Assembly: GCA_002269645.1 (NCBI GenBank)
Contig: NIVC01002321.1
Span: 120,193-184,192 of the forward strand
Direction of reading: 5' to 3'
Length of the DNA: 64,000 bases
Origin: Macrostomum lignano
Taxonomy: Eukaryota
The notes beneath the pieces are model-generated. The model did not search any database. It saw only the letters and a program-made list of their open reading frames with translations, and had not been told where the DNA came from. Shown here in pieces: positions 7,236-59,072 of this stretch. Numbering within the stretch: position 1 is the stretch's first letter; each line of letters begins with the position of its first letter. The translations under genes and the position numbers were made by a program.

Positions 7236-7261
7236 GCCCCAGAAGAACCCCAACAACTCAC

Positions 7262-17902: not shown

Positions 17903-17944
17903 TGTGACAGCAGTCTCCTCTTCAACACTTCATCAGAGTCTCAC

Positions 17945-37766: not shown

Positions 37767-38525
37767 GTTGGCGAAGGTTCGATACCGAGTGATTCAGACG
37801 CCAATATCGTGCTACCACCCGAAATCGTTTTGCCTGGTGACGCTACTGTTGTTGATTTGATCCGGTTTGTATACCCAACGTTCGCTGGGATCGAAAACAG
37901 GGAGAAGTTTTTTGAGAGCCGCGTCATTTTAGCTCCACTAAACGACTCCGTTGATAAAATTAACGATGCATGTTTAGATTTATTTCCAGGCGTTGATCGC
38001 GAATATAGATCAATTGACAGTGTCGAGGATGAGGATGACTTGACGCACTATCCACCTGAAGTGCTGAATAGTATGGACGCACCTGGATTGCCAAAGCATC
38101 GGCTTCGTCTCAAATGCGGGATGCCTGTAGTTCTACTACGAAACTTAAACCCACCACGACTGTGCAACGGAACACGATTAATCATTAAGGAATTGCGAAA
38201 CAATATCTTACAATGTCAAATTGCTGCTGGTCAATTCAAAGGCGAAACAGTTTTGTTGCCGCGCGTACCATTGATACCAAGTAATTTGGATCTACCTGTT
38301 AAGTTCAGAAGGCTACAATTTCCTCTACGACCCTGTTTCTGCATGACTATTCATAAAGCACAAGGCCAATCCCTTGACGTAGTTGGAATTGACCTTGCAG
38401 GTAGCTGTTTTGCGCATGGACAGCTCTCTACACTGCACTTTCCAGAGCAAAAAAATGTTTGTAATGTTCGAGTTCGAATGTGCGGCGAAAGAACCAAAAA
38501 TATCGTTTACCCAGAAGTTTTTTGA
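37767..38525 (+). pseudogene. Helitron RepHel PIF1 helicase C-terminal part
   Basis: VGEG, RVILAPLN, LKCGMPVVLLRNL, LCNGTRL, RLQFPLRPCFCMTIHKAQGQSL, ending TKNIVYPEVF. The GQLYTALSR motif is broken by a local frameshift near 38425 and the N-terminal Rep region is missing. Confidence 0.88.
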
Positions 38526-38768
38526 ATTGGACGTCTTTATTATCTATTAATAATTTTTTACAATTCAATTTAAAAAAAATATGTTGCTATTTTACTACGA
38601 GCCACGATTAAATATTGAAAGTGCATGCTGTCACGCAAAACGTCTATGAGAAAATGTGTGTCCTGAAACTGTATTTTTCGCGGAATGCATAAGCTTGAGA
38701 TGCATTTCTAGCTTAAGATGAATTTCTAGCTGCAAGTAGTAAATTCCATTAAATTTGTCTTCTTCGTT

Positions 38769-39676
38769 ATGTTAAAAGATGGCAAGCAAGCTAAGCAAGT
38801 TTCTCTCTCTGTCGGTCCCATGCGCGGCGTAGTCTCCGGAATTACTTCGTTAAGAACTGAGGTAAGCTTCCATAATTTGCTATTTTGCTTCATATATATA
38901 CTTTTTTTATAAAATCAATCCACTTAAACAACATCGTTTTTTACTAAACCAGATTAGGGATGGCAAGAAGAACAAATGGTTTTCGTTTTTGATGTCAGAT
39001 GAGTCAGGTGAAATCAGAGTGGCAGTTTTTGGCGATGAGTTGCAAGAACACTGGAGCATTTGCGAAAACGGGCAAACAATCTCCATCCGTGAAGGAATGG
39101 TAAAGTGTGCTAATCCAAAATTCAACCGAACAAGCAATATGCATGAAGTTACTCTGTCAATCAATGAGGATAACAAGGACTCTCTCCGCCAGTGTAGCGA
39201 TGCGATAGTTCCCATAAATGGTCCGTTCAAAGCGCTCTCCGAACTACCAAGAATTGGAGTGAATGGGTAAGTCCATCCTCAAAATGTAGAATAAACAGGA
39301 AGATATATATACTTCACACATTTTCATTCTTCATATTTTCAGTTTTGTTGATGTTCTCGGTGTCATTGTCAAAGTGGAACAACCCGTTGACGTCAACACG
39401 CGTTCCGGAAAGTTGGTGCAGCTCGCAAAAGTCTGCATCGTAGACAAATCTGGTTTTCAGACTTTTTGCAACTTCTGGGACGCCCTTGCTACCCAGGTAC
39501 ATTTGTGGAGACCAGGAGACGTAGTCGCCATTAGAAAAGCCAAGATTCAAGAGTACGCCGGCTCGCTTTGTCTTGGTTGCTCATCATCAACTATTTCGTA
39601 TTCGCCTGTTCACGACACTGCTCAAGATCTGAAAACCTGGTACGAAGAGTCCGAGTTTCCGAATTTCTACCGCTAG
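38769..39676 (+). CDS. RPA70-like ssDNA-binding protein with two OB folds (246 aa); exons 38769-38861, 38953-39266, 39343-39676
   Basis: GTAAG/AG introns keep the frame. FSFLMSDESGEIRVAVFG...KCANPKFN resembles DBD-A; VDVLGVIV...IVDKSG...CNFW...AIRKAKIQEYAG...DLKTWY resembles DBD-B. Confidence 0.85.
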
Positions 39677-40721
39677 CTAATAGCTCAACTATGGACATTA
39701 CTGACACCGCAGCTGACGACGTGCTTGCATTTGAATTCCCAGCGTCGATGCAGCCGCATATCGACCGGATGCGTCGAGTTGTTATCCGCTGTGGAGCGCA
39801 ACGGGTACTTATATATACATGTGTATATTAACGGGTATGATTTGACTTTTTAATAGTTTGTACTTGAAGAACACATTAATACACTTTCCATTTTAGTACG
39901 TCGGCCTGTTGAACATTTGTAACGAATTCCTATGAAAGATGGAAAGCTTACGGGAAACTCCCTGAAAAATACGGGAATCTGCTACAACCCCAAGTAACCG
40001 AGGATATTTTATGGTTAAATAATTATTTAGGATATGCTGCAAGTAATTTTAGGTTGCTGTTTAAGTTAATCGTTGTCGATTACGTTAAGATTAAATGCTG
40101 CTGAAAATTTCAATTTGCTAGATCAAACTTTTGTTCTCAAACTTTCAAGCAAATTAACTACTACTTAAATTTGTTCCAGAATTTTTAATCGAATAAAACT
40201 AAACTAACCCAACTAACTAAACTATACTAACTAACTAAATTCACCCGCAAAAATACAATTGTAACCTTATGCCACATGCTAAAAGTAATAATTAAAAGCG
40301 AGTCTCTGAAATAAAAAGTGATAAGTTTGCCCGCAATAACTTCAACATGTCCATGGTCGGATGCTTTTCTTACTTGTTCTGTATATCAGCATACTTTTGA
40401 GTACAAAATGGACGTCGGTTTTATTTGATTGTTAATTTAGGCCTTAAAAATCCAATGGAAGATTGCGTCTAATCCAAAGAGAACTGTACAGTCTCCCCCC
40501 GAAGGGGGGGGCAAATTCGCTAGTCATATACCTAAAGTTGAGTTTGTCTGTCTGTGCGCGTCACGTTTCCGGGCGAACGGCTGGTCCGCCGTCCGTGGGA
40601 CCTGTACCATTCGATGGCACATCTTTCTGGGACAATGTGGCATGTTTCAAATCGCCTTAATGTTGACAGGGAGCTTGGCAATGTGGGAAAAACTGTATTT
40701 TTCCTATCTCCTTAGTGCATT

Positions 40722-41443
40722 CTAGCAACCAAAGTCATAAAAGCAAGTTGCAGTTAAAAGCAACAAAAAACGAGACCCCAGCAACCAAAGCACGAGACCG
40801 TAGCAACCAAAATCAAAAATACCCTGGCAACCAAAATACGAGACCCTAGCAACCAATTCGAAGACCCTAGCAACCAATCCGAAGACCCTAGCAACCAATC
40901 GAGGACCCTAGCAACCAATTCGAGGACCCTAACAACCAATCCGAAGACCCTAGCAACCAATTCGAAGACCTTAGCAACCAATTCGAAGACCCTAGCAACC
41001 AATCCGAGGACCCTAGCAACCAATCCGAGGACCCTAGCAACCAATTCGAGGACCCTAGCAACCAATCCGAAGACCCTAGCAACCAATTCGAGGACCCTAG
41101 CAACCAATCCGAGGACCCTAGCAACCAATTCGAGGACCCTAGCAACCAATCCGAGGACCCTAGCAACCAATCGAGGACCCTAGCAACCAATTCGAAGACC
41201 CTAGCAACCAATTCGAGGACCCTAGCAACCAATTCGAGGACCCTAGCAACCAATTCGAGGACCCTAACAACCAATCCGAAGACCTTAGCAACCAATTCGA
41301 GGACCCTAGCAACCAATTCGAGGACCCTAGCAACCAATTCGAGGACCCTAGCAACCAATTCGAAGACCCTAGCAACCAATTCGAGGACCCTAGCAACCAA
41401 TCCGAGGACCCTAGCAACCAATTCGAGGACCCTAGCAACCAAT
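40722..41443. repeat. 21-bp minisatellite (CCTAGCAACCAATTCGAGGAC)n
   Basis: About 30 copies. Confidence 0.93.
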
Positions 41444-41894
41444 GAACTCATGAACATTGAGATTTATCGTGTTTTGAAATAAATCTGCCTTCGCCCCTTT
41501 CTTTCGATGCACAAGCGCAAAGAACTGATTTAATTGTAGACGAATCGACTCTCGAATCTTCCCCCTTTATTTCAAAACACGAGCGAGACAAACAAAATTG
41601 TCTATGGCAATCATCAACCAATGAAAAGGCACGGGGGGAACCGGATGCAAAAGAGTCAAAAACGAAAATAGCCAGAGCCAGAATAGCAATCCATTCTATT
41701 CATTCATCCATGGTTCTGCTATTCTGCTAAATTCTGCTATTCTGCTAAAGAGTCTATGGTCTTTTGTGTCGTAAGCGCAAACGCGGTGCGGTCGCGATTT
41801 CTTTGGTTTCTTTGGCTATACATAAAAATTTTTTTGCAAATAAGTACAAGATGTGAAAGTCACACTACACAGCATTTCAGTATTATTTTAAGTA

Positions 41895-42498
41895 TACTTT
41901 TTTGCGATTGAATTCGTCCAAACTGCAAAACCTTTCGTCCACTAACGCTTTCTTAATGGGAGCTAAATTTAGATTATACCATAGACAACTGTGTTCACGC
42001 AAAACGGTTCATCCAGTTTGTAAAACATTTCTTCTTCTTCGTCCATCTGCTGATGGTAGCTTCTCGATCAATGCGCCCGGTTTGAACGTAGGTGTCGACA
42101 ATCGTTTTGGCTGTCTTTCTCTTGATCCCAAGGATATCGGCCAGTTGTTTCCAATCGCGGCCTTCTTCAACAGCCAAGGCTAATCGCCTGCGGTCTTCGT
42201 TTGACACTGGATGGTAGGGGCCTCTGTTCATCTTCGACTGTTTTGCCGGGTTCAGAATGGAAGATATGCGTTGCTGTAGCTGTAGTGGTAGCAAAAGCGA
42301 ACTGTCAATTGGGTGTTAACTATGGTAGGAACAGTACACTCGGTCTCTAGTCTAGGGGATGAAATGTTTTACAAACTGGATGAGCCGTTTTGCGTGAACA
42401 CAGTTGTCTATGGTATGATCTAAATTTAGCTCCCACTAAGAAAGCATTTGTGGACGAAAGGTTTTGCAGTTTGGACGAATTCAATCGCAAAAAAAGTA
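41895..42498 (-). mobile_element. Internally deleted IS630-Tc1-mariner element with TIRs of about 137 bp and a TA target duplication
   Basis: 41895-42031 is the inverted repeat of 42361-42498; TA on both flanks; the internal ORF encodes an N-terminal HTH (SNEDRRRL...WKQLADILGIKRKTAKTIV). Confidence 0.85.
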
Positions 42499-43762
42499 TA
42501 TTTCCGTTGCATTGTCTATTGCGATTTGTTATCGAATTTTAATAATATCAATTAAAATTATGTTGGCTCACATACTGTAAGACTAGGATTCCGAGGATTT
42601 GCATCCCATAGATTGGAATTTTTCACGGATGGGACAATTTAATGGGGGAGTTCTGCAATAGATTAGAATTTTCCGTGGATGGGACACTTTAAGCGGGGGG
42701 TTCTGCTAGAGCTAACTATAATTCCCGCAATCGAAACGTGTATAGGGTGACCCACGTTGTCTGTCGCTATTTTGCATCCCAGCTTATCCGCAGTTCATTG
42801 ACATTCGACAAAATCATTCTTAAAACATCGAAATAATGTCAACATACTCTGAGATCGACGAAGAAAAGCTTTCTTTGTCTGATATGCCTGACGAGTTGTT
42901 AAAAAAGGTTCGATGGGTAAGTGAAATTGTCACGTTTTTGCATCCGAAGTACAACATAATTCCTTTGACAGCTCTCTATAAGCTTTTAATTCAACATCTA
43001 GCCTAATTTTATTTGTTATGAAGGTGAAATTTAGCAATTTACGTTTGTTTCTATGGCTGTCTACAAAAAATTAATTTTTTTATTAATATTTTAGCATTTC
43101 AATTAAGATTCGCATGTGTTAACGAAAGTAGTTGACCATCACCGTTTAGTGTGACTATGCCAGCTCGTAACACTTTAAAACCACAAAAGCACTATCAAAA
43201 CAATCGATATGCAGTATTAAGATGCGTTTTTTGGAGATTTTAAATGCTGTAAATGCTTTCGAACAGTTCAGTTTTTTCAATAACTTCCTGTACACGTACA
43301 TAGCACAGTGCACAGTACGTACATCCCTATACTGTACGTTGACTATTACTTTGCTACTCCATCAAATGAAAATGAAAAGTACTTTTTTACACGATAAATT
43401 ATCTGCTTTTCGAAGTTTCTAAGCCTTTATATAGATTATATTGGTAAATTAGTTCTCCTTTTTTGGCTTGAATGATTTAGTTTGATCCCCATGTCACGTA
43501 GCCCTGTATCCTACAGGGGTATGCGGCAGTATGGTTAGCGAATAGCTTTAAAGTATGTAAAGCAAATCAATAGTTAAATCCATATTAACAACTTTACTTG
43601 TCTACTTTGTAAAATAAAATTACCCCGAGTGCTGTCAATGAGTTGTAGAGTTGTAAATTGTTCATTCTGATCGCTGCAATCTGCAGCTTTAAGTTATGAA
43701 ATTTACTTTAGCTTTTGATTGGTACGAATTTTATTTAATTTATTTTATAAAATAAATTTCAG

Positions 43763-43937
43763 ATCTGTCGGATTAATTGGCAACTCCCAGAAGGGAGACC
43801 CGTATCACGGATCGGAGAAGCGGTCCCGGCGAGAAATTGCCAATTGCAACGAGCGGCGTCGAATGCAAAGCATCAATTCTGGCTTCGAGTCGCTCAAGAC
43901 TCTGTTGCCAACGGAAGATGGCGAAAAGTTAAGCAAG
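43763..43937 (+). CDS. TFAP4: bHLH transcription factor AP-4, basic/helix 1 exon (upstream coding exon not identified)
   Basis: RREIANCNERRRMQSINSGFESLKTLLPTEDGEKLSK; CAG acceptor and AAG|GTAAGT donor. Confidence 0.93.
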
Positions 43938-44350
43938 GTAAGTTTAAGGAAAATCCAGTGTATTAACGGTGTCCTAGTGTGTGTCTGGGTAATCCCTATC
44001 CCCGGTCAGCTGTTTAAACTTAGGACTTAGCCAGTGTGGCACTAATGTGCAATAGGCCTAGGCTAGGATTATTTTAGGATCTGTCAGACTGCCAAGTTCA
44101 CTAAAGCACTGAAATGTACGCAATGCGCGCACTATACTACTTAAATACTCCCTCAGTAGAAATAGTAGGTTTTTGTACGCGCATTTTCTAGCTGCTCGTA
44201 TGTGCACCCTAAAAAAATAGTTGGAAAACCGGCCTGATTCTTAAAATAGCAAAGAATTGAGTGCCGATTTTTAACAAATCCGACTTGCTTCTATTTTAGT
44301 AAGTCAACTCGTGTAAAAAAATTGTCGCACACAATTTCAACGCATTTCAG

Positions 44351-44968
44351 GCAGCCATTCTACAACTAACGTCCAAGTACATTCAACATCTTGTTGGCGA
44401 AAATCGACGAATGCGCGACCAGTTGTCGCAGATGCAGCAGCAGCAGCAGCAGCAGCAACAACATCAGCAGCAACCGCCGCAGCAGCCTCGTAACACCGAT
44501 GTGCTGCTAGCCGCATCTGATGTTGCGTTAAGAAAGCGTAAACTGCCCGCCGCTCCTGACGACAGCGACGGCGGAGGAGGAGGAGGAGGAGGCGGCGGCG
44601 GAGTCTACATTGGCTACTTCCAGCAGCAGGGCAATCACACTATTATTCGGGCGCAGCCCCAGCAGCAGCAGCAGCAGCAGCAGCATCCAACCTTCCAACT
44701 AGCTGTCAAGCCTGACTATGAGCAATTCGTTATCGAACCGCCTGTTCACCAACTGCAGCAACAGCATCAGCAGCTTCCCCTGCCTACAAAGCCTAAGCGA
44801 CTCGAGCACCTAATGATGGCCATCGAACGCATCGAAGGCCAATCAAATTTGCAGCAGCAAGAGCAGAATCAGTCTCAATCTATTGCTGTTTCCTCTGAGC
44901 ATAGGCCCTGCTCTACAGAAGCGGCCCGTTGCCTGTTGCAGCAGCAGGAGAGCAGGAGAAGAGAATGA
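44351..44968 (+). CDS. TFAP4: AP-4 last exon, 5' part: helix 2 and polyQ; now ends 6 codons into inserted element 1
   Basis: CAG|GCAGCC gives AAILQLTSKYIQHL...; host sequence ends at CLLQQQ (44947). Confidence 0.88.
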   Translation, partial: AAILQLTSKYIQHLVGENRRMRDQLSQMQQQQQQQQQHQQQPPQQPRNTDVLLAASDVALRKRKLPAAPDDSDGGGGGGGGGGGVYIGYFQQQGNHTIIRAQPQQQQQQQQHPTFQLAVKPDYEQFVIEPPVHQLQQQHQQLPLPTKPKRLEHLMMAIERIEGQSNLQQQEQNQSQSIAVSSEHRPCSTEAARCLLQQQESRRRE

Positions 44969-45351
44969 GGAGGGTGTATGCTAGCACGAAAGGCAGGAAG
45001 AGAGACCCTGGGTTCAACTGCAGAGAAGACGAGGTGAGCTACAGAAGAATGCGCACGGGGCACTCGATTGAGCTGGCTGCCTACAGGAGAAGAATTGGGC
45101 TGCAGGAGGAAGGACGGTGCCGGTGTTGCGGCATGGAAGAAGAGACGATGGAGCATATCTGGAACTGCCCGGCGACGGATGGCAGAAGGAGGATGCGGTG
45201 CTGTGAAGGCATACAGGCGGTCTGCGAGCAACCGAAGGAAGCCCGGAGTTACTGGGAGTGGTGGAGAAGCCTCCCACAGTGGGGAGCCAATATCGAGGAT
45301 GAAACGGACAGGGCGGTGTAGCCGTGTAGTTGGCATCAACAACAACAACAA
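44948..45351 (+). mobile_element. Element 1: heavily 5'-truncated non-LTR retrotransposon (C-terminal zinc-knuckle end, probable (CAA)n tail)
   Basis: RRMRTGHS...CRCCGMEEETMEHIWNC (CCHC); stop at 45321; flanked by CAG runs on both sides. Confidence 0.8.
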
Positions 45352-45379
45352 CAGCAGCAGCAGCAGCAGCAGCCTCAGC

Positions 45380-45486
45380 GGGACCAGACGATCATGGTGC
45401 AGGAAGGCCATCACCTTCCTGTGGCAAGCGACCTCCTCCACGAGGGGCCCCTGGACGCCCGCTGCACGCGGGTGACGAAGTGTCGC
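45380..45486 (+). ncRNA. Candidate HDV-like self-cleaving ribozyme at the 5' end of element 2
   Basis: Folded by hand: P2 GCGAC/GTCGC, L3 TCCACG, P1.1 CC/GG, P4 CGCCCGC/GCGGGTG, J4/2 CGAA (C at 45476), imperfect P1 GGGACC/GGCCCC. Confidence 0.6.
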
Positions 45487-48400
45487 AACCATCAGGGATG
45501 CTGCAACTATCAACATCTTGGCCCAGCCCACGTCCCCACTGCCAGACTCGATGAGGCAGAAATGGACGGAAATATCAATACGGTCCTGCGGCTGAGGGGA
45601 GGAGACGCGGTCCACGACGCGCCCAACCCCCACCCCAGGCGGAGTAGGATACAGCACAGGCGCAGCTCCAAACCCGGCCCAGAGCTCCAGGTCCTTCAAT
45701 TCAACTGTAATGGATTGCAGGCCCGTCGCACGGAGCTAGCCGAGAGATTAGCCCAGCTGCGCCCCTGCGCGGTCCTTCTCCAAGAGACTAAACTCCGCCC
45801 TGGCGCCACCTTCCAACCGCCGCACGGGTACAGTGTGGCAGCGCGCAAGGACGGACTGCCGAAAGCCGATTCTGAGGTCCTCCTCGACCAACCGACCATC
45901 GCCGCGACCACCACGGCCCATGGGGCTGCCGCTACGAACAACGACCCGCTCTCGGCAGACGGCGGGCGCCTCCCGCCTCGCCCGAGATGCCGCCTCAGAT
46001 GGCCGGAGGAGAAGGCAAGATGGTGCCTCGGTTGCCGCAGCGGACGAACTGCATGTAGCGAACGGAACCGCCCATGGCCTGAGCCTCGTTCCGCTCCACC
46101 GGACCGCACCCCGGACCCCTCGGCAAGCCCCGAACAGTCGAAACCGGCAGCAACTAAAGCAATCCAAGGCGCCAGTGCTAGCGCTCGCTCCTCCTCTACC
46201 TGGCAATGCCCTGTTTGCTCCCGCCCGACCGGCCGGGGATATAGTGTCCAGTGCCAAGGCTGCAAGGAGTGGCTGCACCTCAAATGCAGCCAACTCCCCA
46301 GCACGAAAGCCTACAGAGCCGACTTCCACGGCCCATGTTGCCAAGAATCCGCCAGGTCCAACCAACAACAGACGCAGGAGCAGGAGCGCACGACCAACCG
46401 CCCTGCAGACACCCCGGCGCCAAGACCGACCGTTGTCGACGCCCGGCCGGACAGCAGCCATAACCCAAAAAAAATCCACAAAAAAATCCAGTGCGCTACC
46501 GGCCGCGGAGGCGTTATGATCCTGGTCCGCAAGGACATCGCCTTCAACGAACCATGGAGCAACGACCACGCTCAGCTCGACCTCACCGCTTGCACTATCG
46601 CTATCCCGGGGGCCGGTGCCATCAAGCTCGTGTCGGTCTACGCCCCCCAGATAGCAACCAACGCCAAGAGCTTTGGCAACCAAAATGGGACGACATCCCA
46701 ACTGCCAACAAATCCATCGTAGCGGGTGATTTTAATGGATACGGGAGCTGGGACCACCACCAGCCCGACGACGATCGGGGCGCCAGCATCGAGGAATGGG
46801 CGCTTCGCAAAAGCCTACACCTCTGCAACCGGGACGCCACGCACACCCGTACCAACCCGGCGACCGGCGGACTCAGCTGCCCGGATACCACCTGGTGCAC
46901 CAGTGGCCTAGCCACAGCCCTCAAGACATCCTGGCGCACTATTGAAGACCTCGGCAGCGACCACCTGCCCATCGTTTTCACCCTTACTAAGGCCAAAACG
47001 ACCGCCAAGCAACAACATAGAGCGAAATGGTGCTTCGCCAAAGCCGACTGGACGTCCTTCAAGGCCGAGCTCGACCGCGCAGAAGACCATCTGAAACCGT
47101 CCTCAGCCACCTCTGGCTCGCGGATTGACGCCGACCACCAGCGTCTCTGTCAATCGATTCTCACGGCGGCCGCCGGCTCCATTCCGCGTGGATGTCGACA
47201 GAGGCGAGGCAAACCCTTCTGGACGGATGCGTGCACCGAGGCCTGCAGGAACTGCAGCAGCGCCAGAAAGCAAGCGGAGCGCTCCAAAACACCGGAAGAC
47301 CTCAGCGCGTACCACACGGCCAGACGCGTGGCAGACGCGACCATCAAAGCGGAGAAAGCCAACTTCTGGAACCAGCGCGTCGCCGAGCTGAACGTCAACA
47401 GCGACCTCTTTGCGCTGACCAGAGCGATGAGAGGAGACCCGCCACCTCCGCCTAGCAACTGCGCGCTGGTGCTACCTGCCGACGAGGCCCGCGGCAGACC
47501 GGGGAAGGCGCTCACAACTGACCGCGACAAAGCTAACGCATTTTGCGCTATCTACGCGGAGGTCTCCCGCATCAAACGACACAAAGACGACCGCAGCATC
47601 AACCGCGACGCCTTCGCCGCCATGCGCACAGTATGTAGCGCACACACGTCAACCGCCAGATCAGGCCTGTGCAAGGAGTTCAACATCACCGAACTCCGCT
47701 CCGCCATCCGCTCCCTTAAGTCCAGAAAGAGCCCAGGCCCGGACGAGGTGACAAACGAAATGCTCAAACGCCTCCCGGCCCGCAGCGAGAACAGGCTCCT
47801 GAATCTCATTAACAAAGCCTGGCTCTCTGGACGCTGTCCGCATCAGTGGCGCCGGGCCATCATCATCCCGATACCCAAACGCGGAAAACGCGCGGATGAC
47901 CCCGGCAGCTATCGCCCAGTGGCCCTGACTAGCTGCATAGCCAAAGTCGCCGAAAAAATGGTTTACCTCCGCCTGCGCCACGACCTCGAAGACCGCGGGA
48001 TGCTCAGCTCGGTGCAGGCTGGATTCCGCCAGGGCCGATCGTGCGAAGAGCAGATCGCTCGCATCGCCCAGGCAATCTTCGACGGACTAGAGGACCCGCA
48101 GGCTCAACGAGCAGTGCTCTGCCTGCTTGACTTCTCGAGGGCCTACGACAGGGTCTGGCGCAAGGCCCTCATCTGTAAGCTTCGCGAACTCGGCGTCCCC
48201 GTCTGCTTTCTCAGATGGATTAACAGTTTCATCAATGACAGACGCGCAAAGGTCCGCTTCGGCAGCGCCACCAGTAAGGAGCGAGTGTTTCGCGAGGGAC
48301 TGCCCCAAGGGAGCGTCATCGCCCCGCTCCTCTGGCTGGTTTACGTGAACGACCTGCCAAAGGCCATCGCGGAAGCCGCCCCGGAGGTCGAGACCAGCCT

Positions 48401-50226
48401 CTACGCCGATGACAGCGCCCTGCTGGCCCTGGACCGCAAGCTAGCCAACTGCGCGAGCAAACTTCAACCGGCTCTCGACGCGGTCCAACGTTGGTGCGAG
48501 CGCTGGAAAGTGCTGCTGAGCCCAGGCAAATGCAGCTACAGCACCTTCAGCCTCAGCCCAGCGGAAAATAGAGGCAAGGCTCGGCTCAATGTCAGCATCG
48601 GCAACAAACAACTGGCCTTTGAGCCCCACCCAGTCTTCCTTGGGGTGAAACTCGACGACCATCTCGGCTTTGCCGAACACGCCAAAGACATTCGCCGCCG
48701 CATGACCGCCCGCAGACGACCCCTTCAGGCCATTGCTCACCGCCAACTGGGCGCAACTCAAGACACCCTTCGAGCGGTCTACACCGCCACCGTGCGCTCA
48801 GTGGCCGACTACGGCAGCGGAATCTGGCTGGCGGGAGCAGCCCCGAGCACCCGACTCATGATTGAACGACAACAAAACGCCTGTGCGCGGCTCATCACAG
48901 GGTGCGTCCAAACCACCCACACCAACCGACTTCTCAGTATCGCAGAGCTCCCCCCGGTCAGTCATGTCGCGTTGGAGCGCGCCAGCATGCTGCGCGAGCG
49001 TATGGCGCGGCTACAGGCGGACACTCCCGCCCACACCATCGCCACCAAGACCACGCGACCTCGCCTAAAGAACCGTACTTACGCAGCTCAGGCCAGAACG
49101 GCGCCTGACGCGCACCGGGTCGACGGGGCAGGCGACGTCGGCGAAGAGCGTAGCCGCCAACCCGGAGCGGCCTTGGATGCCAACCGCCCCCACAGGGGCT
49201 GCTGGCGTAGATCCGCCGAGGAGCTCTGCAGCGGCTGCGAGCTCGACCGTCTCCCACGCGCGGCTCGCCACCTTGGCCCGCCACCCTGGGATGCCGAAGG
49301 GGCGGAGACGGTTGAGTTCGACACCTCTCTCACCGCCCTGGTCTCCCGCCAGATGACGGCGCTCGAGAAGCTGGAGCGCGTCAGCCCCGCCGTCGCCGAT
49401 CTGGCCGCCAGCCCGTGCGTCATCTGGACCGACGGGTCCGTCGGCGAAGGCTCGCGGAACGGCGGGGGAGCGGCCATCGCTCAATGGGAGGCTCCTGGCA
49501 CCCGCCACTGCGTACCCGCCGGAGCCTGGTGCAGCAGCTTTACGGCGGAGCTGGTCGCCATCCGCGAGGCCCTTAGGCTCCTTCTCTCCAACGATGCCCC
49601 CCCCGTCTGTCACCATCGCTACCGACAGCCTGAGCGCGGTCCAGGCCCTGAGTGCCGGCCCTCTGGCCCAAACTGACAGCGTGGCGTCGGACTGTTGGGA
49701 CCTCCTTCTCCGTCTCACGACCGGTAACCGCACGGTCACCTTCCGTTGGGTCCCAGCCCACTGCGGTCTGGCGGGCAACGAGGAGGCCGACAAAGCGGCA
49801 TCGGAAGCGGCCGCCCTCGACCAACAACACGTGCCGCTCCAGCTACAAGCGGCTAGGACAGCCCTCCGCCGCCGCCGCCGGGCCATGGACGCCGACTACG
49901 CGGCACCGGCCAAACCACCACCGGCCCACCTCCCACGCCGCCTCCAGGTGCTGATAAACCAGCTCCGCGCTGGCGCCAGTATGATTAACTTCAGCACCCG
50001 CCACAGGCTTGGCATCGCGGACTCCGCTGCCTGTCCCGATTGCGGCGCGGAGGACACGGTGCGCCACATCCTACACGACTGCCCCCGTGGCGACCGCTAC
50101 CGGGCAGTCCACGGGCTCGCCTCCGAGGACTTGATGGAGTCCCCGGAGGCCATCATCGGCCTACTTCGCAGCATGGGGCGCCTGCCCCCCTCTAGATCGG
50201 CAGAGCCGGATACGGAGGAGCCCTGA
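45394..50226 (+). CDS. Element 2 polyprotein, about 1610 aa after correcting two poly-C frameshifts (46643-46648 and 49597-49604): APE with PHD insert, RT, RNase H, zinc knuckle
   Basis: LQFNCNG, LLQETKL, VAGDFNG, SDHLPI (APE); KSPGPD, YRPVALTS, GLPQGSV, YADD (RT); IWTDGS, AELVAI, TDSLS, WVPAHCG, NEEAD (RNase H); CPDC..H...C. Confidence 0.88.
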
Positions 50227-50251
50227 AGAAAAAGAAAGAAAGAAAGAAAGA

Positions 50252-50342
50252 AGCAGCCTCAGCCAGCCGTCATGATCAGCCCGTTCACGCCGCAGGACAC
50301 CAGCCAGCCTGCTGATCGGCAACAACAACAGCAGCAGCAGCA
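50252..50342 (+). pseudogene. TFAP4: Stranded AP-4 exon segment between elements 2 and 3 (QPQPAVMISPFTPQDTSQPADRQQQQ)
   Basis: Bounded by TSD copies; in frame with the flanking host segments once the elements are removed. Confidence 0.8.
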
Positions 50343-53102
50343 ACTGCTCTAGAAGCACGACTGTCAGCAGAGAAAAGTGGTTGGAGGTAAACAGGAACCT
50401 GGAGGCTAAAATCAGGGAAAAGAAGCGGTCCTTCTGGGCCGAACATGTGGAAAGCCTTAAAGAAAACGACGACGGGAAGAAGACCTGGAGTACCATCAAA
50501 TCACTGTACTCAGCTAGAGATACTGCCCCGCCTAACCAAATTTTAGCTGACAAAGGGCGCGAAGCCAGATCGGATGTCGAAAAGGCGGCTGTGTTCGTTA
50601 GCATGTACGCTGATAACAGTAAGGTCAAGATCGGGAAGGCGGACCGGGTCAAGCGGGTGGAGGTGGCTAGAAGACTAAGAGCCTATAACGCGCACCAGGA
50701 GTTTGACACACCATTCGTTATGGATGAGATGGATGATGCGCTCAAGCTGATGGACCCAACGAAGAAGGGGGGAGTTGACGGAGTTGAAGTTCGGCTTCTT
50801 AAAAACCTCTCCGTAGTAGGCCGTCAGAGATGGTTGGATGTTTTCAACAGAAGCTGGGCAGATGAGCTATGCCCTGGGTCCTGGAAGAAAGCGGAAATCG
50901 TTCCGTTGCTTAAACCCGGCAAAGACCCAGCGGCGAAGGAATCCTACAGACCGGTCAGCCTAACTCCGGTCTGCGCCAAGCTCATGGAAAGGATGGTCGT
51001 GAACAGGTTGTACTTCTGGCTGGAGGAGAATAACATCATTCAGCCCTGGCAAGCCGGCTTCCAGAGGGGCAGAAGCACCGAGGAACAGGTGCTCAGGCTT
51101 GTGCAGCACATTCAAGACGGCTGGGAGAGCAAAAAACCAAAAAAAACTCTGGCCGTGACATTGGACTGTTCGAAAGCGTTCGAAAAAGTTTGGAGAGTGA
51201 AACTCCTTGAGAGAATGATGGAGGAGGGCGTCCCAGCCAGGATCACAAGGTGGTTTGCTAGCTTCTTGGAAGGAAGACAAGCCAGAGTCCGTGCCGGGGA
51301 CGGCAACAGCAAATACAGACGCCTCCAGGAAGGTCTCCCGCAGGGCGCGGTGAGCTCCCCTGTTCTGTTCCTCCTGTATGTAAATGGTTGGACCGGTGTG
51401 AAAGAGGAGGGAGTGCAGTACGGCGGCTTCGCGGATGACCTGGCAGTCTGGTGCAGCGGAGATGACACCGAGGAGATCACTAAACGCCTGCAGCGTGCGC
51501 TGGATAAGATCGGCGGCTGGGCGGATGGCCTTAAAATTGAGCTGAACCCAGGGAAGTGCGAATCCTGCCTCTTCAGCAAGTCCACGAAAGACAAAAATCG
51601 CCACCCGAAGCTCTGGATTAGCGGAAAGGAGATCGCGGGGAAAGTCTCGCTTAAGTACCTGGGAGTGCGCATCGACCGTGGCCTCAATTTCCAGGAACAC
51701 ACGGACGCCGTGGTCGATAAAATGCGCCGAAGAAGCAGGGTTCTCAAGGCGGTGGCCAATACGGAATGGGGCTGGCAGGCGGAGAGTCTCAAGAAAGTTT
51801 ACTCTGCGATCGTTGAGAGCTGCGTTTGGTACGCCGCGGCAGCTTGGTTACCCTGGATTTCGAAGACCAACGTTCAAAAGATCGAGCGGGCGCAGCGTGA
51901 AGCCCTCCGTCTGACAGCTGGGCTCGTGAAATCAACGCCGGTGGAAGCGGTTCACCTGGAAACAGGAATCCCGCCCATTTCCGAAAAAGCGATCCTGCGC
52001 TGCGTTCTCGAATGGGAGAAAGCTGAGCGCGAGCCCCGACCCAGCCTCAAGCGTGATATGTGCGACATCGTCCTCCCCAGGAGACTTAAGGCAAACAAGG
52101 GATGGCGCGAGCAAGCGAGGTATGAAAGTAGATCCATCAGCGAGGCTCCCAGGGAGGAATTCATGAGGAAAAGGCACCCCCCTTGGAGAAGGCTCAGACT
52201 CGACGGGGTCGGGTTGTTTCCCGACCTATCCGGAAATGCCAAGAAGGGTGATGAAGACATCGCAGAAGACGCGGCTCGAACCATCCAGGAAAGAGGTCAG
52301 GTCGAGTTGAAAATCTTCACGGACGGCTCTGTAGACGGAAACGGAAGGAACGGAGGAGCGGCCTGTGTCGCCTGGTGCGATGAACGTGAGTACTGCAAGT
52401 TAGCTGCAGCGGGCGAATTCTGTAGCTCCCTTATCGCGGAAAGAACGGCTTTGCACCTGGCGCTAGATCTTGTGGAAGAGCTGAGGCCAAGTAGCGCTCT
52501 CATCCTGACTGACAGCAAGTCCGCCGTCTTGGCCACCGGTACCGAGAGGGTCACTGGAAACAGGAGCCAATTTAACTTGATTGACAGGCTCAGGAGGACG
52601 AGTGTATGGTGCAGCATCACCCTCCAGTGGATCCCAGGCCACTGCAGCATCGCTGGAAATGAGAGGGCCGACGAGCTGGCAAAGCAGGCAGCGCTCTTGC
52701 CCCAAGGGCAGACGGCCGTTGAGTTTGAGGCGTTACGCAGACACCTGAAGCACCGGTGGAGGCCCTGCATAAATGACCCCCGTCTGCGCTCGGTGTACGG
52801 TGGTGTGATTGAACGCGCGGAATGTGGCAGGAAAGTTGCTTCCATCTTAGCCCAGCTCAGGTCTGGTCACTGCAGACTCACTAAGTACTGGAGGCAGAAG
52901 ATTGGTCTGGAAGCAGAAGGCGTTTGCGAGGACTGCGGTGACATAGAAGATAAAGACCACTGGTGGTCGTGCGCGCGTTGGGACGGGCTTCGGCAGCACA
53001 CTGGTCTGCGTGAACTGAAGGATCTGCGCGAGGAGAACATGGTGATAGGGTTCTTGAGGGAGGCCCACCCGCAGTGGATCACCTGAGAGCTCCGGTCCGA
53101 GG

Positions 53103-53113
<11 letters not shown>
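50343..53113 (+). mobile_element. Element 3: 5'-truncated I-group non-LTR retrotransposon with uninterrupted RT-RNase H-CCHC ORF (50381-53086), (CA)n tail and TSD of about 15 bp ACAGCAGCAGCAGCA
   Basis: YRPVSLT, GLPQGAV, FADD, IFTDGS, WIPGHCS, NERAD, CEDC..H..C; TSD at 50328-50342 and 53114-53128. Confidence 0.92.
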
Positions 53114-53136
<23 letters not shown>

Positions 53137-53366
53137 CAATTGATGACGAGGACGCAGCCGAGAAGGATTCCAATTTGTCGTTGTCCTCCCAGCGACTTGT
53201 CGTAGTCGATTTGGCAGCGGCGGCTGCGGCAGCAGCTGTAGAATCTTCGCCACACTCGGCCGCTGGCTCGTCTGACCCGGACTCGCCCGGCCAGTGCCGG
53301 CCAAGAGCGATACCACACAAGTACCTGCACCGGCCGCAAGTTGTCCAAGCTAATCGGTCTAATTAA
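53114..53366 (+). pseudogene. TFAP4: Original 3' end of the AP-4 last exon (QQQPIDDEDAAEKDSNLSLSS...QANRSN stop)
   Basis: Open frame from the CAG run to TAA at 53366, in the same frame as the reconstructed host exon. Confidence 0.78.
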
Positions 53367-54842
53367 GGTTGCCGGCCCCGCCTCGCCCCCCTCTGCCTTC
53401 AATTATTATTATTATTATGGGTATCTATCGCATGCGTTTATTAGTTCATAATAGTAGTAATAATAATTCTACTAGTAACATTTATTTATTGGTCATTACT
53501 AAAAGCTTAGCTTAGTCTGGATACTGGATTACTGGTGCGCCTGTACAGACTCGCTGGCAGACCAACTGTAATTATTTATTAAAGTCATTCATTAATGCTT
53601 AAAGCCGGTTTTATATTTCAATTCAGATTCTTTCTGACCCCCCCCGTCTGTACACAAACGCGCTAGAAGTTTAGATAAGCCTCTGATCATATATATCCGG
53701 TATATATGCTAAGCCGTCAGTTTCTATGGCTAAAAGTGCAGACACCATCAATTAATTAATCATTTAGTTAATTGATTTTATCTGATAAATAATTTGTAAT
53801 TCAAAAATTTGTGTACCACAATTAATACACCATATATGAATGTAGTCAAACGTTTATTTGCTCAACACGAAATCACAGTTTCAATTTGTTGTTGTTATTG
53901 TTGTTGCTGCTGTTGTTATGTTGCAGAGTTGCTCTTGTCGCTTCAAGTTAATTAAGTTATATAGTTTTTTAGCGTATCTATGCCAAATATAAACATATAA
54001 GCATTGAGGGGTTACAGTTAATTTCTTAGCAGACAACAATTCTGCCTCATCTAGTAATTATTTACTAAACATAATTCATGTAATCCCTTGTTAATCCTAT
54101 TGTTCCTAATTAAACTTTTAATATTCCCGTGTCTGCTCATGCCGTTGCTATCTGCAATCACTAGCGTATTCCTCAGTGCATATGTAATAAAACATTAAAT
54201 AGTGCGTATTGTCAACTACTGTAATCTTTATAGTCCTACTAATAGTAATATTGGTTTTTTTCTTGTGTTTTTGTGTTTAAAAATGCCATGCCTGCTCGCG
54301 TTGAACCTGTGTGCGTCAGATATAATTAGTAAAAATCAATTGTATATCTATATTATTGTAATTTGATATACTACTATTATATTGAAACTATTCGCAAATA
54401 TATGGCTATCTGACACTAATAGTAATAAATATTTATTTAGGCAGAATCAATTGCGCAAAATAATAAAACCCGCGCATTCATACTACTGATTTTAAGTAGG
54501 TAAAAAAATTTAAATCTAATTAAAGATTTTTTCGATACATATCGTCGTTAATTGTACCAATGGTAAAATGCCGCTTAGAACACCGAAATTAATAGGAAGA
54601 AGCCCAGCCGCGTTAAATTGTGCATCTATAACAGTTAGTTGTAATAACAGTGTATATTTATACTAAACTCTACTGTTAAGTCAGCAATGCTATATCTACC
54701 GACATGTTGCGCTCGATTGTCAAGGTGCATGAATGTTCTGAAGTAAAACTAAGGACTAAAGTACATCAATTTTTAATACTAATTTATATTATTATTACCT
54801 GCCCTAATGGCCAGATGTGCAAGCGACGCATCCTTAATTACC

Positions 54843-54993: not shown

Positions 54994-55249
54994 AACCTGA
55001 TCAATTTTATACTAAACTTTGAACAGTAATCAGTATTTGGGTTCGTGCGCACGGGAAGTTCAGTTTTTGTATCTAATAACTACAGTTGAAGCCTAATAAC
55101 TTGATGCTGAATCAGTGTGGAATGTGAATGCTAATTATAATAAATTAAGTGTGCTTGTGCATGTTGAGTAAATAAAATATATATATTGTTTTCTACTCGA
55201 AGTAAGAACTGCGCTTCACACTTAAATTGAGACCCGCGCCCCTTCACAT

Positions 55250-55512
55250 TGAGAATCTATCTTCTAATTGAGAATCACTCTTTCCCTAGTTGAGAATCAC
55301 TCTTTTCCTAATTGAGAATCACTCTTTTCCTAATTGAGAATCACTCTTTCCCTAATTGAGAATCACTCTTTCCCTAGTTGAGAATCACTCTTTTCCTAAT
55401 TGAGAATCACTCTTTCCCTAGTTGAGAATCACTCTTTTCCTAATTGAGAATCACTCTTTCCCTAGTTGAGAATCACTCTTTTCCTAATTGAGAATCACTC
55501 TTCCCTTAATTT
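55250..55512. repeat. 22-bp minisatellite (TTGAGAATCACTCTTTTCCTAA)n
   Basis: About 11 copies. Confidence 0.9.
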
Positions 55513-56086
55513 AGAATCGCCCATCCCCTATGTTATCAGTGATGACCCAAAACAAAGAAATGACGCACATCGTAGGGGATACCCGACAGGCCACATCACA
55601 GATATGACACTCCAAAAAAATATATCCGACCAGAATATTTCGAAATATGACACATAAAAGTTTCGCAAAAAACTATAAATTTTGCATTACATGCTACTAA
55701 TAGTAGAAATGCGAAAATAATTCGATCGCAGCTCCAAAGGGTTTCAAATAAATCGCATTAGACACAAGTCCAGCTATTTTAGTTATATATATTATTTACT
55801 TGCAAATTTTATAATTATATTTTATGTGCATACGAATTTTAGTTATAATTAATAAGTTTTCAAATATTATATTATCTTTACATGTTTCACATGTTAGAAA
55901 ATAGTTATATTAGCATGTTGAAATAGTGCATTGGTAGGCAGTCACCGAATGGGCAAATGTACTCCTGCCGGCATGCGACTTGGGCCGCTCAGCTGGGCCG
56001 GGCGGCTGCTGGGCTGCGGTGGGCGGCTGCTCAGCTGATCCGGGCTGTGACGCATCGGTCTGAGTAGAGAAATTGCAGTTATTGGT

Positions 56087-57773
56087 AGAGACAGGGCAGA
56101 ATGGTAGAGACAGGGCAGAATGGTAGAGACAGGGCAGTATGGTAGAGACAGGGCAGAATGGTAGAGACAGGGCAGAATGGTAGAGACAGGGCAGAATGGT
56201 AGAGACAGGGCAGTTATTGGTAGAGACAGGGCAGAATGGTAGAGACAGGGCAGAATGGTAGAGACAGGGCAGAATGGTAGAGACAGGGCAGAATGGTAGA
56301 GACAGGGCAGTTATTGGTAGAGACAGGGCAGAATGGTAGAGACAGGGCAGTTATTGGTAGAGAAAGGGCAGAATGGTAGAGACAGGGCAGAATGGTAGAG
56401 ACAGGGCAGAATGGTAGAGACAGGGCAGTTATTGGTAGAGACAGGGCAGAATGGTAGAGACAGGGCAGAATGGTAGAGACAGGGCAGAATGGTAGAGACA
56501 GGGCAGAATGGTAGAGACAGGGCAGTTATTGGTAGAGACAGGGCAGAATGGTAGAGACAGGGCAGTTATTGGTAGAGAAAGGGCAGAATGGTAGAGACAG
56601 GGCAGAATGGTAGAGACAGGGCAGTATGGTAGAGACAGGGCAGTATGGTAGAGACAGGGCAGAATGGTAGAGACAGGGCAGAATGGTAGAGACAGGGCAG
56701 AATGGTAGAGACAGGGCAGTATGGTAGAAACAGGGCAGTATGGTAGAGACAGGGCAGAATGGTAGAGACAGGGCAGAATGGTAGAGACAGGGCAGAATGG
56801 TAGAGACAGGGCAGAATGGTAGAGACAGGGCAGAATGGTAGAGACAGGGTAGAATGGTAGAGACAGGGCAGAATGGTAGAGACAGGGTAGAATGGTAGAG
56901 ACAGGGCAGAATGGTAGAGACAGGGCAGTTATTGGTAGAGAAAGGGCAGAATGGTAGAGACAGGGCAGAATGGTAGAGACAGGGCAGTATGGTAGAGACA
57001 GGGCAGTATGGTAGAGACAGGGCAGAATGGTAGAGACAGGGCAGAATGGTAGAGACAGGGCAGAATGGTAGAGACAGGGCAGAATGGTAGAGACAGGGCA
57101 GAATGGTAGAGACAGGGCAGAATGGTAGAGACAGGGTAGAATGGTAGAGACAGGGCAGAATGGTAGAGACAGGGTAGAATGGTAGAGACAGGGCAGAATG
57201 GTAGAGACAGGGTAGAATGGTAGAGACATGGTAGAATGGTAGAGACAGGGTAGAATGGTAGAGACAGGGCAGTATGGTAGAAACAGGGCAGTATGGTAGA
57301 CACAGGGCAGAATGGTAGAGACAGGGCAGAATGGTAGAGACAGGGCAGAATGGTAGAGACAGGGCAGAATGGTAGAGACAGGGCAGAATGGTAGAGACAG
57401 GGCAGAATGGTAGAGACAGGGCAGTATGGTAGAAACAGGGCAGTATGGTAGAGACAGGGCAGAATGGTAGAGACAGGGCAGAATGGTAGAGACAGGGCAG
57501 AATGGTAGAGACAGGGCAGAATGGTAGAGACAGGGCAGAATGGTAGAGAAAGGGCAGAATGGTAGAGACAGGGCAGAATGGTAGAGACAGGGTAGAATGG
57601 TAGAGACAGGGCAGAATGGTAGAGACAGGGTAGAATGGTAGAGACAGGGCAGAATGGTAGAGACAGGGTAGAATGGTAGAGACAGGGTAGAATGGTAGAG
57701 ACAGGGTAGAATGGTAGAGACAGGGTAGAATGGTAGAGACAGGGTAGAATGGTAGAGACAGGGCAGTTATTGG
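56087..57773. repeat. 19-bp minisatellite (GGTAGAGACAGGGCAGAAT)n
   Basis: About 88 copies. Confidence 0.95.
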
Positions 57774-59072
57774 TAAAAATATTGCTCTTCACCTTCACTT
57801 ACCATTAACTGGAATCGATCAGACGCGGCGAGCTCTTTCTCAAACGACTTTTGCCGCTTAGCGACGTCATAGCATTTGCCTTTGCGGCTTATCAGCTGTT
57901 TTATGAACTCCAATTGTTTGGACATTTGGGTTAATTTATTGAAAAAATGAAATTAATTGACAAATAGAAATCTGGCTTTTTGAAAGGCCAACTGAAGTCC
58001 CATTTTATATGAAGCGGCAGTTTGACATCAACAAGTTCACTCTAATTTTCATTGGTTCGGAATGGGGTGGTCAAAATATTTCACGTTCATAGTACGTGTC
58101 AAATCCACTATGCTTTTAGACTCAAAGGGGTGGACTGCTTCATTTCAGTAGTGACTCATTTTGACACCAAATTACTTTGATTCAAAATGAAACATGCGCA
58201 TTAACCAGCATGAAACATACATTAGGTACAATATGCCCCACTCACATTCACAGCCTCATTCACAGCCTCATTCACTGCCTCATTCACAGCCTCACAGCCA
58301 GACTCACTGATCGACCCTAATCCAGTTTGGGTTTCGAATACTCAGTTATTTCTGCATTTTCAATTCATTGAGTAGCTCTGTGAGATCCGCTGCTGTCAAT
58401 ATACAGTGGGCAGTGGATAAAAAATAAATGACACACAATGAATTGGATAGGAATTAAATGAATGATGCAAAATAGAAATTCGAGAAATAGATTAAATATG
58501 CAAGAAAAAGACGTATATGCTCAAAAATTAGGATGAAGTCAGTCATCAACAAATCAAAGAGTAGATAAAATTTCTCTTTGGTGACTAAATAAAGTTTACA
58601 ATTTTACATATTTGGAACTGCTTGACACTATTCTTTACGATAATGGCGCAATCATAAGTTTGGTGCAACAAATTTGCTTAGATAGGTGTCTTCCACCATG
58701 AACCACCCATCACTGTCACCGAGCATTGCGCAATCTTGAGCATACCCAGAGCACGTATTTGCTTTTAAGCAATCGTGAGAACTGCGATTCTTATCTTTAC
58801 TCAAAATCCAGCTACAGTGGAAAGATCGAGAAAAGCGCGAAACACACCTCCAAACAAACCGCTGTGCATAATACAAAACAATATATAGATAAAAAGTGGA
58901 ACGCTCACAGCAGGTGACCAAACCAAAAGTAAAAGCAAAGCCCAATTGTATTTTGATAAAAAGCCATTACTAAAGAAGCTGGCGAAATATTTCTGAGCTA
59001 ACCTGTCAATATCAAGTATAAGTTAAAATGTACGAGCGCAGTAAATTCAAACATGGATTTAAACTATAGCGG

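Follow-up and report, generated by a model that had tools for sequence, protein, structure and literature searches.

Sequence-specific LINEs are usually said to persist through harmless multicopy targets, among them rDNA, snRNA genes, telomeres and non-coding microsatellites. The Drosophila I factor terminates in a trinucleotide repeat, (TAA)n. Microsatellites are used as targets by Waldo, (ACAY)n, and Mino, (AC)n, in R1; by Kibi, (TC)n, and Koshi, (TTC)n, in Tx1; by Dong, (TAA)n, in R4; and by Togen, (TG)n (PMC4494074, PMC4640811, PMC3124438). A LINE is considered target-specific when one kind of sequence is found in >20% of a family's flanks (PMC4494074). In the Ingi clade, a single ORF is found together with an N-terminal 2A peptide (PMC3708506).

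We analyzed the final 64 kb of the Macrostomum lignano contig NIVC01002321.1, hereafter the window, in which three LINEs (E1, E2 and E3) interrupt the last exon of an AP-4 gene. Like the microsatellite LINEs, these elements and their relatives are APE-type (R4/NeSL elements being RLE-type), lie in fixed orientation in simple repeats, end in tails of the same repeat kind and form head-to-tail arrays. Unlike them, they are associated with CAA/CAG, a trinucleotide repeat that is at the same time made of codons, with the result that coding exons are struck; they carry an RNase H and a C-terminal zinc finger, to which full-length relatives add an N-terminal 2A peptide and PHD fingers; and their specificity appears to be a preference that is not strict. 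The domain order APE-RT-RNase H-Cys/His finger is that of the Drosophila I factor and of the I/Ingi/Nimb group, a likeness at the level of domains, but the tails across the E3/E1 clade are (CAA)n, (CAC)n or (CA)n. To our knowledge, no CAG/CAA target association has been reported for the I/Ingi/Nimb clades. The full-text literature that we searched held no LINE with CAA/CAG specificity, a weak negative given that Repbase Reports and subscription journals lay outside its coverage and that "(CAA)n" is unsearchable as written.

Three insertions in one AP-4 homeologue

A search for bHLH-zipper motifs and the names of its homologues identify the host gene as an orthologue of AP-4 (TFAP4). The motif search found the AP-4 signature motif RREIANCNERRRMQSINSGFESLKTLLPTEDGEKLSKAAIL, and the hits, named AP-4 in flukes and vertebrates, carry PF00010. 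The basic region, helix 1 and the loop (..RREIANCNERRRMQSINSGFESLKTLLPTEDGEKLSK) are encoded by an exon at 43764..43937 (+ strand), which was located by the same motif search, lies within the NCBI protein PAA58908.1 and has homologues named transcription factor AP-4. The first part of the last exon (44351..44947, +) encodes helix 2, the zipper and Q-rich regions, ends with ..CLLQQQ in (CAG)3 and aligns at ~92% with a homeologue described below.

E1 (44948..45351, +) directly follows this first part. It is the 3′-terminal 404 bp of a LINE, with a C-terminal zinc finger (CRCCGMEEETMEHIWNC), a stop codon at 45319-45321 and a (CAA)5 tail at 45337-45351. A host segment, (CAG)7CCTCAGC (45352..45379, +), separates it from E2 and carries the upstream copy of the E2 target-site duplication (TSD). 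E2 (45380..50251, +) is a 4.9-kb LINE with endonuclease, RT, RNase H and zinc finger, and ends in a (GAAA)n tail at 50227-50251. The next host segment, AGCAGCCTCAGC..PAVMISPFTPQDTSQPADR(Q)n (50252..50342, +), holds the downstream TSD copy of E2 and the upstream one of E3. E3 (50343..53113, +), a 5′-truncated 2.8-kb LINE, has an intact 901-aa ORF (RT, RNase H, zinc finger CEDCGDIEDKDHWWSC), a stop codon at 53084-53086, a 16-nt 3′UTR and a (CA)n tail. The final part of the exon (53114..53366, +), reading (CAG)n PIDDEDAAEK...ANRSN and stop, starts with the downstream E3 TSD and matches the C-terminus of the homeologous protein. The E2 TSD, AGCAGCCTCAGC, is exact over 12 bp (45368-45379 and 50252-50263) and so is the E3 TSD, ACAGCAGCAGCAGCA, over 15 bp (50328-50342 and 53114-53128); that of E1 is ambiguous, (CAG)3 at most. 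The strand of all three elements is the sense strand of the AP-4 exon.

The corresponding site is empty in the M. lignano homeologue found on contig NIVC01000068.1 (locus L088, protein PAA91955.1, ~92% identical). This homeologue reads ...CLLQQQQPQPAVMISPF...DRQQQQQQQPIDDEDAAEK...NRSN, and its DNA is uninterrupted: CTGTTG(CAG)4CCTCAGCCAGCC...GATCGG(CAA)4(CAG)3CCAATTG. E1 is missing from it, and none of the tails of E1, E2 and E3 was found in it. Excising the three elements from the window yields one open frame that reaches the NRSN-stop at 53366. Because the homeologue carries the empty site, E1, E2 and E3 represent three independent insertions, all in sense orientation and with TSDs, and not a misassembly. 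An assembly artefact would require that collapsed CAG repeats in the PacBio assembly had linked LINE copies to the exon. The long noisy reads and the homopolymer frameshifts of E2 lend themselves to such an idea, but the E2 TSD includes the non-repeat CCTCAGC and is single-copy at the empty site, the intervening host pieces keep their correct order and frame, and the annotated protein PAA58908.1 runs from the AP-4 exon into E1 (..QQQESRRRE). We thus regard an artefact as extremely improbable. A single composite insertion was ruled out, as the stretches of host DNA that separate the elements match those of the empty site and follow in the same order. A host polyQ origin of the (CAA)5 at the end of E1 was also ruled out, since the empty site lacks it; (CAA)n belongs to the element as its tail and is not the target.

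A sequence-only reading of the window had described three unnested, sense-oriented non-LTR elements of different families, and their positions, domains and protein identities bear this out. Its TSDs for E2 and E3 and its ambiguous TSD for E1 were recovered, the former two being exact. The open frame that it predicted upon removal of the elements was confirmed by the stop at 53366 and by PAA91955.1, and the empty allele that it suggested looking for among paralogs turned out to be the homeologue. Its picture of a single AP-4 exon hit three times holds, with the correction that AP-4 is present as two homeologues, of which this is one, and that longer CAG tracts are empty. These tracts (44435-44461 and 44660-44683) lie 300-500 bp upstream in the same exon and are without insertion.

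Class and relatives of the elements

In APE-type LINEs, an endonuclease of the exo/endo/phosphatase fold precedes the RT in one ORF; the domain matches of E2 and E3 agree with this class, and full-length relatives have all domains. The TSDs of 12 and 15 bp, the 5′ truncation of both E1 and E3, the simple-repeat tails and the empty site in the homeologue together make up a LINE insertion signature. E2 matched Exo_endo_phos(_2) and RVT_1 in Pfam, and E3 matched RVT_1 and RNase_H, while the zf-RVT match of E1 was weak (19.5 bits, under the gathering score of 27.5). The endonuclease of E2 holds a ~215-aa insert with a PHD finger; its C-terminal finger is CX2C...HX4C, its 2A-like peptide is but a degenerate trace, and two frameshifts of +/-1 lie in C homopolymers near 46665 and 49600. 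Protein identity is ~31% between E2 and E3, and 39% over 49 aa between E1 and E3, indicating distinct families.

Features of the I group and of Ingi-like elements were found: RNase_H Pfam matches together with a CX2CX7-9HX4C motif in E2, E3 and relatives, and an N-terminal 2A-like D[VI]ExNPGP followed by PHD fingers in P0001, P0006, P0009, P0015, L086 and L090. The layout of the E3/E1 clade, sampled mostly from marine metagenome contigs, is 2A-PHD-endonuclease-RT-RNase H-zinc finger. E3 groups with the (CAA)n-tailed L001-L004. The nearest relatives of E1, at 40-46% identity, are likewise (CAA)n-tailed (L027, L033, L036, L041 and L044). E2 groups with the (GAA)n-tailed L084/L085, which form a sister lineage of the E3/E1 clade. 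The solved endonucleases of R1Bm and TRAS1 gave no match at E≤0.01, and the PDB search returned only L1 ORF2p and RNase H/PHD domains.

No further copy of E1, E2 or E3 was found within the 64-kb window, in which the only other find was an unrelated, decayed RT fragment at ~21300-22500 (-). No M. lignano copy was found in the protein collection either; the best matches were only 49% identical for E3 and 46% for E2, and therefore M. lignano TE ORFs are absent from that collection.

CAG/CAA runs at the junctions of the elements and their relatives

Runs of at least four CA[AG] units make up 0.34% of the window, and 3/3 LINE 3′ junctions lie at such runs, which is far beyond chance, though the figure is post hoc. 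In the E3/E1 clade, a (CA[AC]) run of at least three units was found just past the short 3′UTR at 24 of 36 candidate 3′ ends. CAG followed directly at ~17 of ~31 genuine 3′ ends by manual reading and at 11 of 23 by script, a share that pools many families of the clade and comes from metagenome contigs biased toward repeats with consistent flanks. Across 308 kb of relatives, CA[ACG] runs of at least four units were much more frequent in sense than in antisense (89 vs 13). Element pairs in the contigs of relatives were in the same orientation in eight cases vs one in the opposite orientation, and mixed families formed head-to-tail arrays. Fixed orientation and arrays were therefore found among the relatives, with all three window elements being sense as well.

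Individual loci give the same picture. L006, L039 and L064 belong to one family and their upstream DNA differs, yet (CAA)n-CACAG is found at each full-length 5′ end. The tail of L054 is (CAA)6(CAG)7. In L003, (CAA)5(CAG)3 joins two different families, and the junction that follows E1 is the same. P0122, chosen on account of its many contigs, proved to be another family, adjacent to telomeres, and was uninformative on CAG.

One might argue that the CA-rich repeats are tails only, the arrays arising by insertion of tail into tail or by recombination, and that CAG is no target in its own right, the AP-4 hits being due to a likeness of CAG to the CAA tail that suffices for microhomology priming after a non-specific nick. 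Indeed, the (CAA)n missing from the empty site is a tail, many junctions consist of a tail and then the next element, and an r(CAA)/d(CTG) pairing would match at 2/3 positions. However, (CAG)13 and (CAG)5 lie just upstream of the 5′-truncated copies in L051 and L061, respectively, where no tail is involved; the tail of E3 is (CA)n; and the (GAAA)n tail of E2 shares ≤1 nt with its own target. Such an explanation seems improbable to us.

The preference of the E3/E1 clade is not strict: the CAA-tailed L101, a relative found in a real genome, has inserted into ordinary AT-rich DNA, with the TSD CTTTAACAAT. Several other tails of the clade also run into unrelated sequence. A CAG/CAA preference that is present but not strict is thus partly supported for this clade. 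For the E2 lineage, a CAG habit is not supported: its four relatives L084, L085, L086 and L090 have (GAA)n tails, and 0/4 has a CAG flank. The TSDs of L084 and L085 are ordinary, non-CAG sequences (GAATAACGTTCTTTGAA and GTAGGCAATAGG), and the 3′ flanks of L086 and L090 are non-CAG. The sequence-only reading had proposed that all these families prefer (CAG)n; the fixed orientation and arrays of E3/E1 relatives agree with this, while the four E2 relatives, and L101 as regards strictness, speak against it.

These same observations are what an untargeted origin can draw upon. A local hot spot (for example, nick-prone or structure-forming CAG/CTG, chromatin that is open at an expressed gene's 3′ end, or lesions that the first insertion had left), combined with relaxed selection on a redundant broken copy, would accommodate an E2 lineage devoid of CAG habit and a clade able, as L101 is, to use ordinary sites. 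It would also accommodate nick positions that, as inferred for E1, E2 and E3, fall in three different repeat registers, and the intact AP-4 homeologue, owing to which insertions might be tolerated. Yet relaxed selection would cover the whole locus and not 130 bp, endonuclease-dependent insertion typically leaves TSDs like those of 12 and 15 bp seen here, and a hot spot cannot explain why the CAG/CAA association, the strand bias and the arrays recur in contigs of unrelated organisms. Overall, we consider an untargeted origin unlikely, though by no means negligible.

A proposed CAG/CAA-preferring clade and its possible consequences

The explanation that we favor, and deem rather probable, is that the AP-4 insertions reflect three target-primed reverse-transcription events together with a CAG/CAA preference of the E3/E1 clade. 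Three separate events would have brought three LINE families, all APE-type and RNase H-bearing, into one AP-4 homeologue, whose last exon holds, close to its 3′ end, the two short repeats of glutamine codons that were hit. Members of the E1/E3 clade would integrate preferentially at CAG/CAA sites and into the tails of fellow members, the sense strand being the CAG/CAA strand. The endonuclease would likely nick the bottom strand within (CTG/TTG)n, and the resulting TG-rich 3′ end would likely pair with the CA-rich tail of the RNA and prime cDNA synthesis. PolyQ-coding tracts would thereby be natural targets. As for E2, either a CAG preference exists in its own family or it took advantage of the same locally favorable site. 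A broader proposal, which we put forward only tentatively, is that RNase H-bearing LINEs of a widespread clade, marine for the most part, home in sense orientation on CAG/CAA codon repeats and recurrently mutate polyQ exons, the target being shared by several co-resident families, possibly including the (GAA)n-tailed E2 lineage.

For M. lignano, the insertions mean that, following genome duplication, one AP-4 homeologue recently lost its C-terminal third. AP-4 being duplicated in this species, the truncated copy could be tolerated. If true, a lineage preferring CAG/CAA would be the opposite case of LINEs persisting through harmless targets: its target doubles as a codon repeat, and genes are broken. 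It would then become testable how target choice is shared between the endonuclease and the pairing of the RNA tail, whether polyQ tracts are shaped by such elements, and whether an RT/endonuclease preferring CAG repeats exists in nature.

Three LINEs in the last exon of an AP-4 gene

Reading of the sequence at 44000-54500, an ORF listing and a Pfam scan confirmed three pieces of non-LTR retrotransposons, all + strand. E1 (44948-45351) comprises no more than the terminal 404 bp of an element; it encodes a C-terminal CX2C...HX4C finger, has its stop codon at 45319-45321 and carries (CAA)5 as its tail. E2 (45380-50251) carries an exo/endo/phosphatase endonuclease, an RT, an RNase H, a CX2C...HX4C-type finger and a (GAAA)n 3' end. 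E3 (50343-53113) is 5'-truncated after the endonuclease, and retains an intact 901-aa RT-RNase H-finger ORF; its 3'UTR is 16 nt long and its tail is (CA)n. Since their pairwise protein identity is only ~30-39%, they belong to three families. Two frameshifts interrupt E2, near 46665 and 49600 (46660-46670 and 49596-49606), each of ±1 in a run of 7-8 C. These could be long-read assembly errors instead of decay, in which case E2 may be an intact, young copy. The three LINEs are G+C-rich (56-66% over 44948-53113 against ~30-45% in the flanking host region), as are their metagenomic relatives.

As the sequence-only reading had stated, E2 and E3 have target-site duplications (TSDs) and that of E1 is ambiguous; the former are exact, AGCAGCCTCAGC (12 bp) and ACAGCAGCAGCAGCA (15 bp), respectively, and the latter is (CAG)3 at most. 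Likewise, removing the three elements in silico did restore a single open host frame, ending in ...ANRSN-stop at 53366. The upstream host exon (43764-43937) encodes RREIANCNERRRMQSINSGFESLKTLLPTEDGEKLSK. Used as a query, the rebuilt host protein matched proteins annotated as transcription factor AP-4 in species from flukes to vertebrates, and showed a 98% match to PAA58908.1, a partial Macrostomum lignano protein encoded by NIVC01002321.1 (GCA_002269645.1). That contig matches window 33764-54968 at 100% identity, so the window forms its end. PAA58908.1 terminates in ...CLLQQQESRRRE, showing that the annotated gene model runs directly into E1.

The 90%-identity cluster of PAA58908.1 includes a second M. 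lignano protein, PAA91955.1 (NIVC01000068.1), which reads ...CLLQQQQPQPAVMISPFTPQDTSQPADRQQQQQQQPIDDEDAAEK...ANRSN. Its locus, the homeologous AP-4 locus L088, provides the empty allele that had been proposed as a check. L088 follows the window collinearly (~86-92% identity) except that 44950-53115 is missing, and reads CTGTTG(CAG)4CCTCAGCCAGCC...GATCGG(CAA)4(CAG)3CCAATTG. Nucleotide comparison found AGCAGCCTCAGC once in the empty site, none of the E1, E2 and E3 tails, and both short inter-element host pieces in the correct order. This indicated that the three insertions are independent events, in two small Gln-codon repeats ~90 bp apart, and that they postdate the duplication, in one homeologue. 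A possibility raised earlier was that the locus is a chimeric misassembly; the single AGCAGCCTCAGC and the ordered host pieces in L088 make this very unlikely. The claim that three elements sit at polyglutamine-codon repeats of one AP-4 exon holds, and the empty site adds weight to it. The longest CAG tracts of the exon, at 44435-44461 and 44660-44683, are unoccupied.

Also missing from L088 is a 5.7-kb stretch (37011-42710) holding a Helitron-like, Pif1-type helicase fragment (37809-38525) and a 21-bp minisatellite (40821-41443). Minisatellites are extraordinarily abundant in the window (1-30000 and 55000-64000), for instance 118 bp x 42 at 59073-64000, 19 bp x 88 at 56083-57766, 25 bp x 56 at 12460-13871 and 28 bp x 25 at 10069-10781, with many of them placed between the exons of a - strand gene for a class-C GPCR (mGluR-like; 7232-8497, 17933-18484). 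At 21300-22500 (- strand) lies the decayed RT fragment of an unrelated LINE, which shows 24-35% identity to assorted LINE RTs; neither its 3' end nor a tail could be clearly located.

Junctions of E1 and E3 relatives

The best E3 match in the protein collection was 49% identical, and no close M. lignano copies were present there. Relatives of E3 and E1 lie mostly on metagenome contigs of 4-7 kb, from marine and beach-sand samples. Full-length ones share a common architecture, with a 2A-like peptide (D[VI]ExNPGP) and two PHD-like fingers ahead of the endonuclease, RT and RNase H, and a finger at the C-terminus. The 2A-like "ribosome skipping" peptide, e.g., LLLRAGDVEKNPGP, opens the protein ahead of the PHD fingers (L002, 150-230, and, among relatives of E2, L086, 6040-6100, and L090, 40-95). 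A rough neighbour-joining tree built on the C-terminal 330 aa placed E3 with the (CAA)n-tailed L001-L004; the E1 fragment shared 40-46% identity with L027, L033, L036, L041 and L044, which also have (CAA)n tails. The 3' end of L001 (4364-4462, beach-sand contig), an inverted fold-back copy of the zinc-finger region, was excluded because it is probably an assembly artefact.

A metagenome scan yielded 80 further loci, whose 3' ends were placed by the finger and the stop codon. After a short 3'UTR, 24 of 36 candidate 3' ends carried a (CAA)n or (CAC)n(CAA)n run; some of the others had (CA)n, some directly (CAG)n. CAG directly followed the tail in ~17 of ~31 genuine 3' ends by manual reading (11/23 by script), as in (CAA)5(CAG)3 of L003, (CAA)6(CAG)7 of L054, (CAA)19CAGCAG of L022 and CA(CAG)5 of L045. 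At 5' ends, three members of one family (L006, L039, L064) had unrelated upstream DNA, and (CAA)n-CACAG at the full-length 5' end in 3/3, and 5'-truncated copies directly followed (CAG)13 (L051) and (CAG)5 (L061). Over 308 kb, CA[ACG] runs of at least 4 units numbered 89 on the sense strand versus 13 on the other. Two-element contigs held eight head-to-tail pairs and one head-to-head. Paired elements were often of different families with a CA-rich repeat as sole separator, an arrangement matched by E1-E2-E3. The metagenome sample behind all of these counts over-represents arrays and consistent targets, because assemblers cross repeats only if flanks agree between copies.

Judged from these relatives, a CAG/CAA preference of the E1 and E3 lineages is likely. 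The relative L101 (34% identity) lies on an 874-kb contig of apparently eukaryotic genomic origin; its tail is (CAA)5, but its TSD, CTTTAACAAT, lies in AT-rich DNA, so that the habit is a preference, or family-dependent. P0122, an RNase H LINE family of more distant kinship, occurs on 10 TARA/other marine contigs (L091-L100). Its flanks are alike across many samples: (GA)n precedes it, and telomere repeats, (CCCTAA)n, follow at ~1-2 kb. It resembles a subtelomeric/telomere-associated element of an abundant marine eukaryote.

Insertion mode and known microsatellite-specific LINEs

The insertions are of the TPRT type with TSDs, the CA-rich tails belong to the elements, and CAG/CAA stands at the junctions. 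The endonuclease would nick the bottom strand inside (CTG/TTG)n, and the TG-rich primer would pair with the CA-rich RNA 3' end. Predicted nicks differ in register (E1 CTG^CAA, E2 GCT^GCT, E3 TGT^TGT), which favours tail pairing combined with a loose preference over a strict recognition site. Sense insertion into polyQ exons would be automatic, because CAG and CAA are both glutamine codons.

Known microsatellite-specific LINEs are Waldo and Mino (R1), Kibi, Koshi and the (TTCC)n type (Tx1), Dong (R4) and Togen, at (TG)n (PMC4494074, PMC4640811, PMC3124438); a family was counted as target-specific if one sequence type made up >20% of its flanks (PMC4494074). The E3/E1 clade appears to work in a similar way, but its likely target is a codon repeat, its specificity is not strict, and it has RNase H, 2A and PHD. 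The closest described domain set is that of Ingi-type and other I-group elements (PMC3708506). A full-text literature search found no description of a CAA/CAG-specific LINE, which is weak evidence of novelty.

The E2 lineage

The best E2 relatives, among them a Convolutriloba macropyga protein and the large contigs L084-L086, L089 and L090, are 41-46% identical and make up a sister lineage whose tails are (GAA)n. The TSDs are GAATAACGTTCTTTGAA in L084 and GTAGGCAATAGG in L085, and CAG was not found at the flanks of L086 and L090. Moreover, the E2 tail has at most 1 base in common with its target. The location of E2 at a CAG tract is therefore unexplained by the known behaviour of its lineage, for which a CAG/CAA preference is unsupported; the alternatives are a preference gained by the M. 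lignano family itself and a locally favourable site. The sequence-only reading had proposed CAG-repeat targeting for all three elements, which is partly supported: relatives' junctions, strand bias and arrays favour this for the E1 and E3 lineages, and the non-CAG TSDs and flanks lend it no support for that of E2.

E2 keeps a mere degenerate trace of the 2A peptide, GGDAVHDAPNPHP (45590-45640). Its endonuclease is split by a ~215-aa insert between the "RKD" and "GGV" strands (45850-46500), and a PHD finger lies within this insert (Pfam E=1.6e-6). In the relatives P0087 and L089 (7000-7300), the insert at the equivalent position is shorter and Cys-rich (WTCKR..WC.GC). Such a chromatin- or DNA-reading module within the E2 nuclease could influence target choice.
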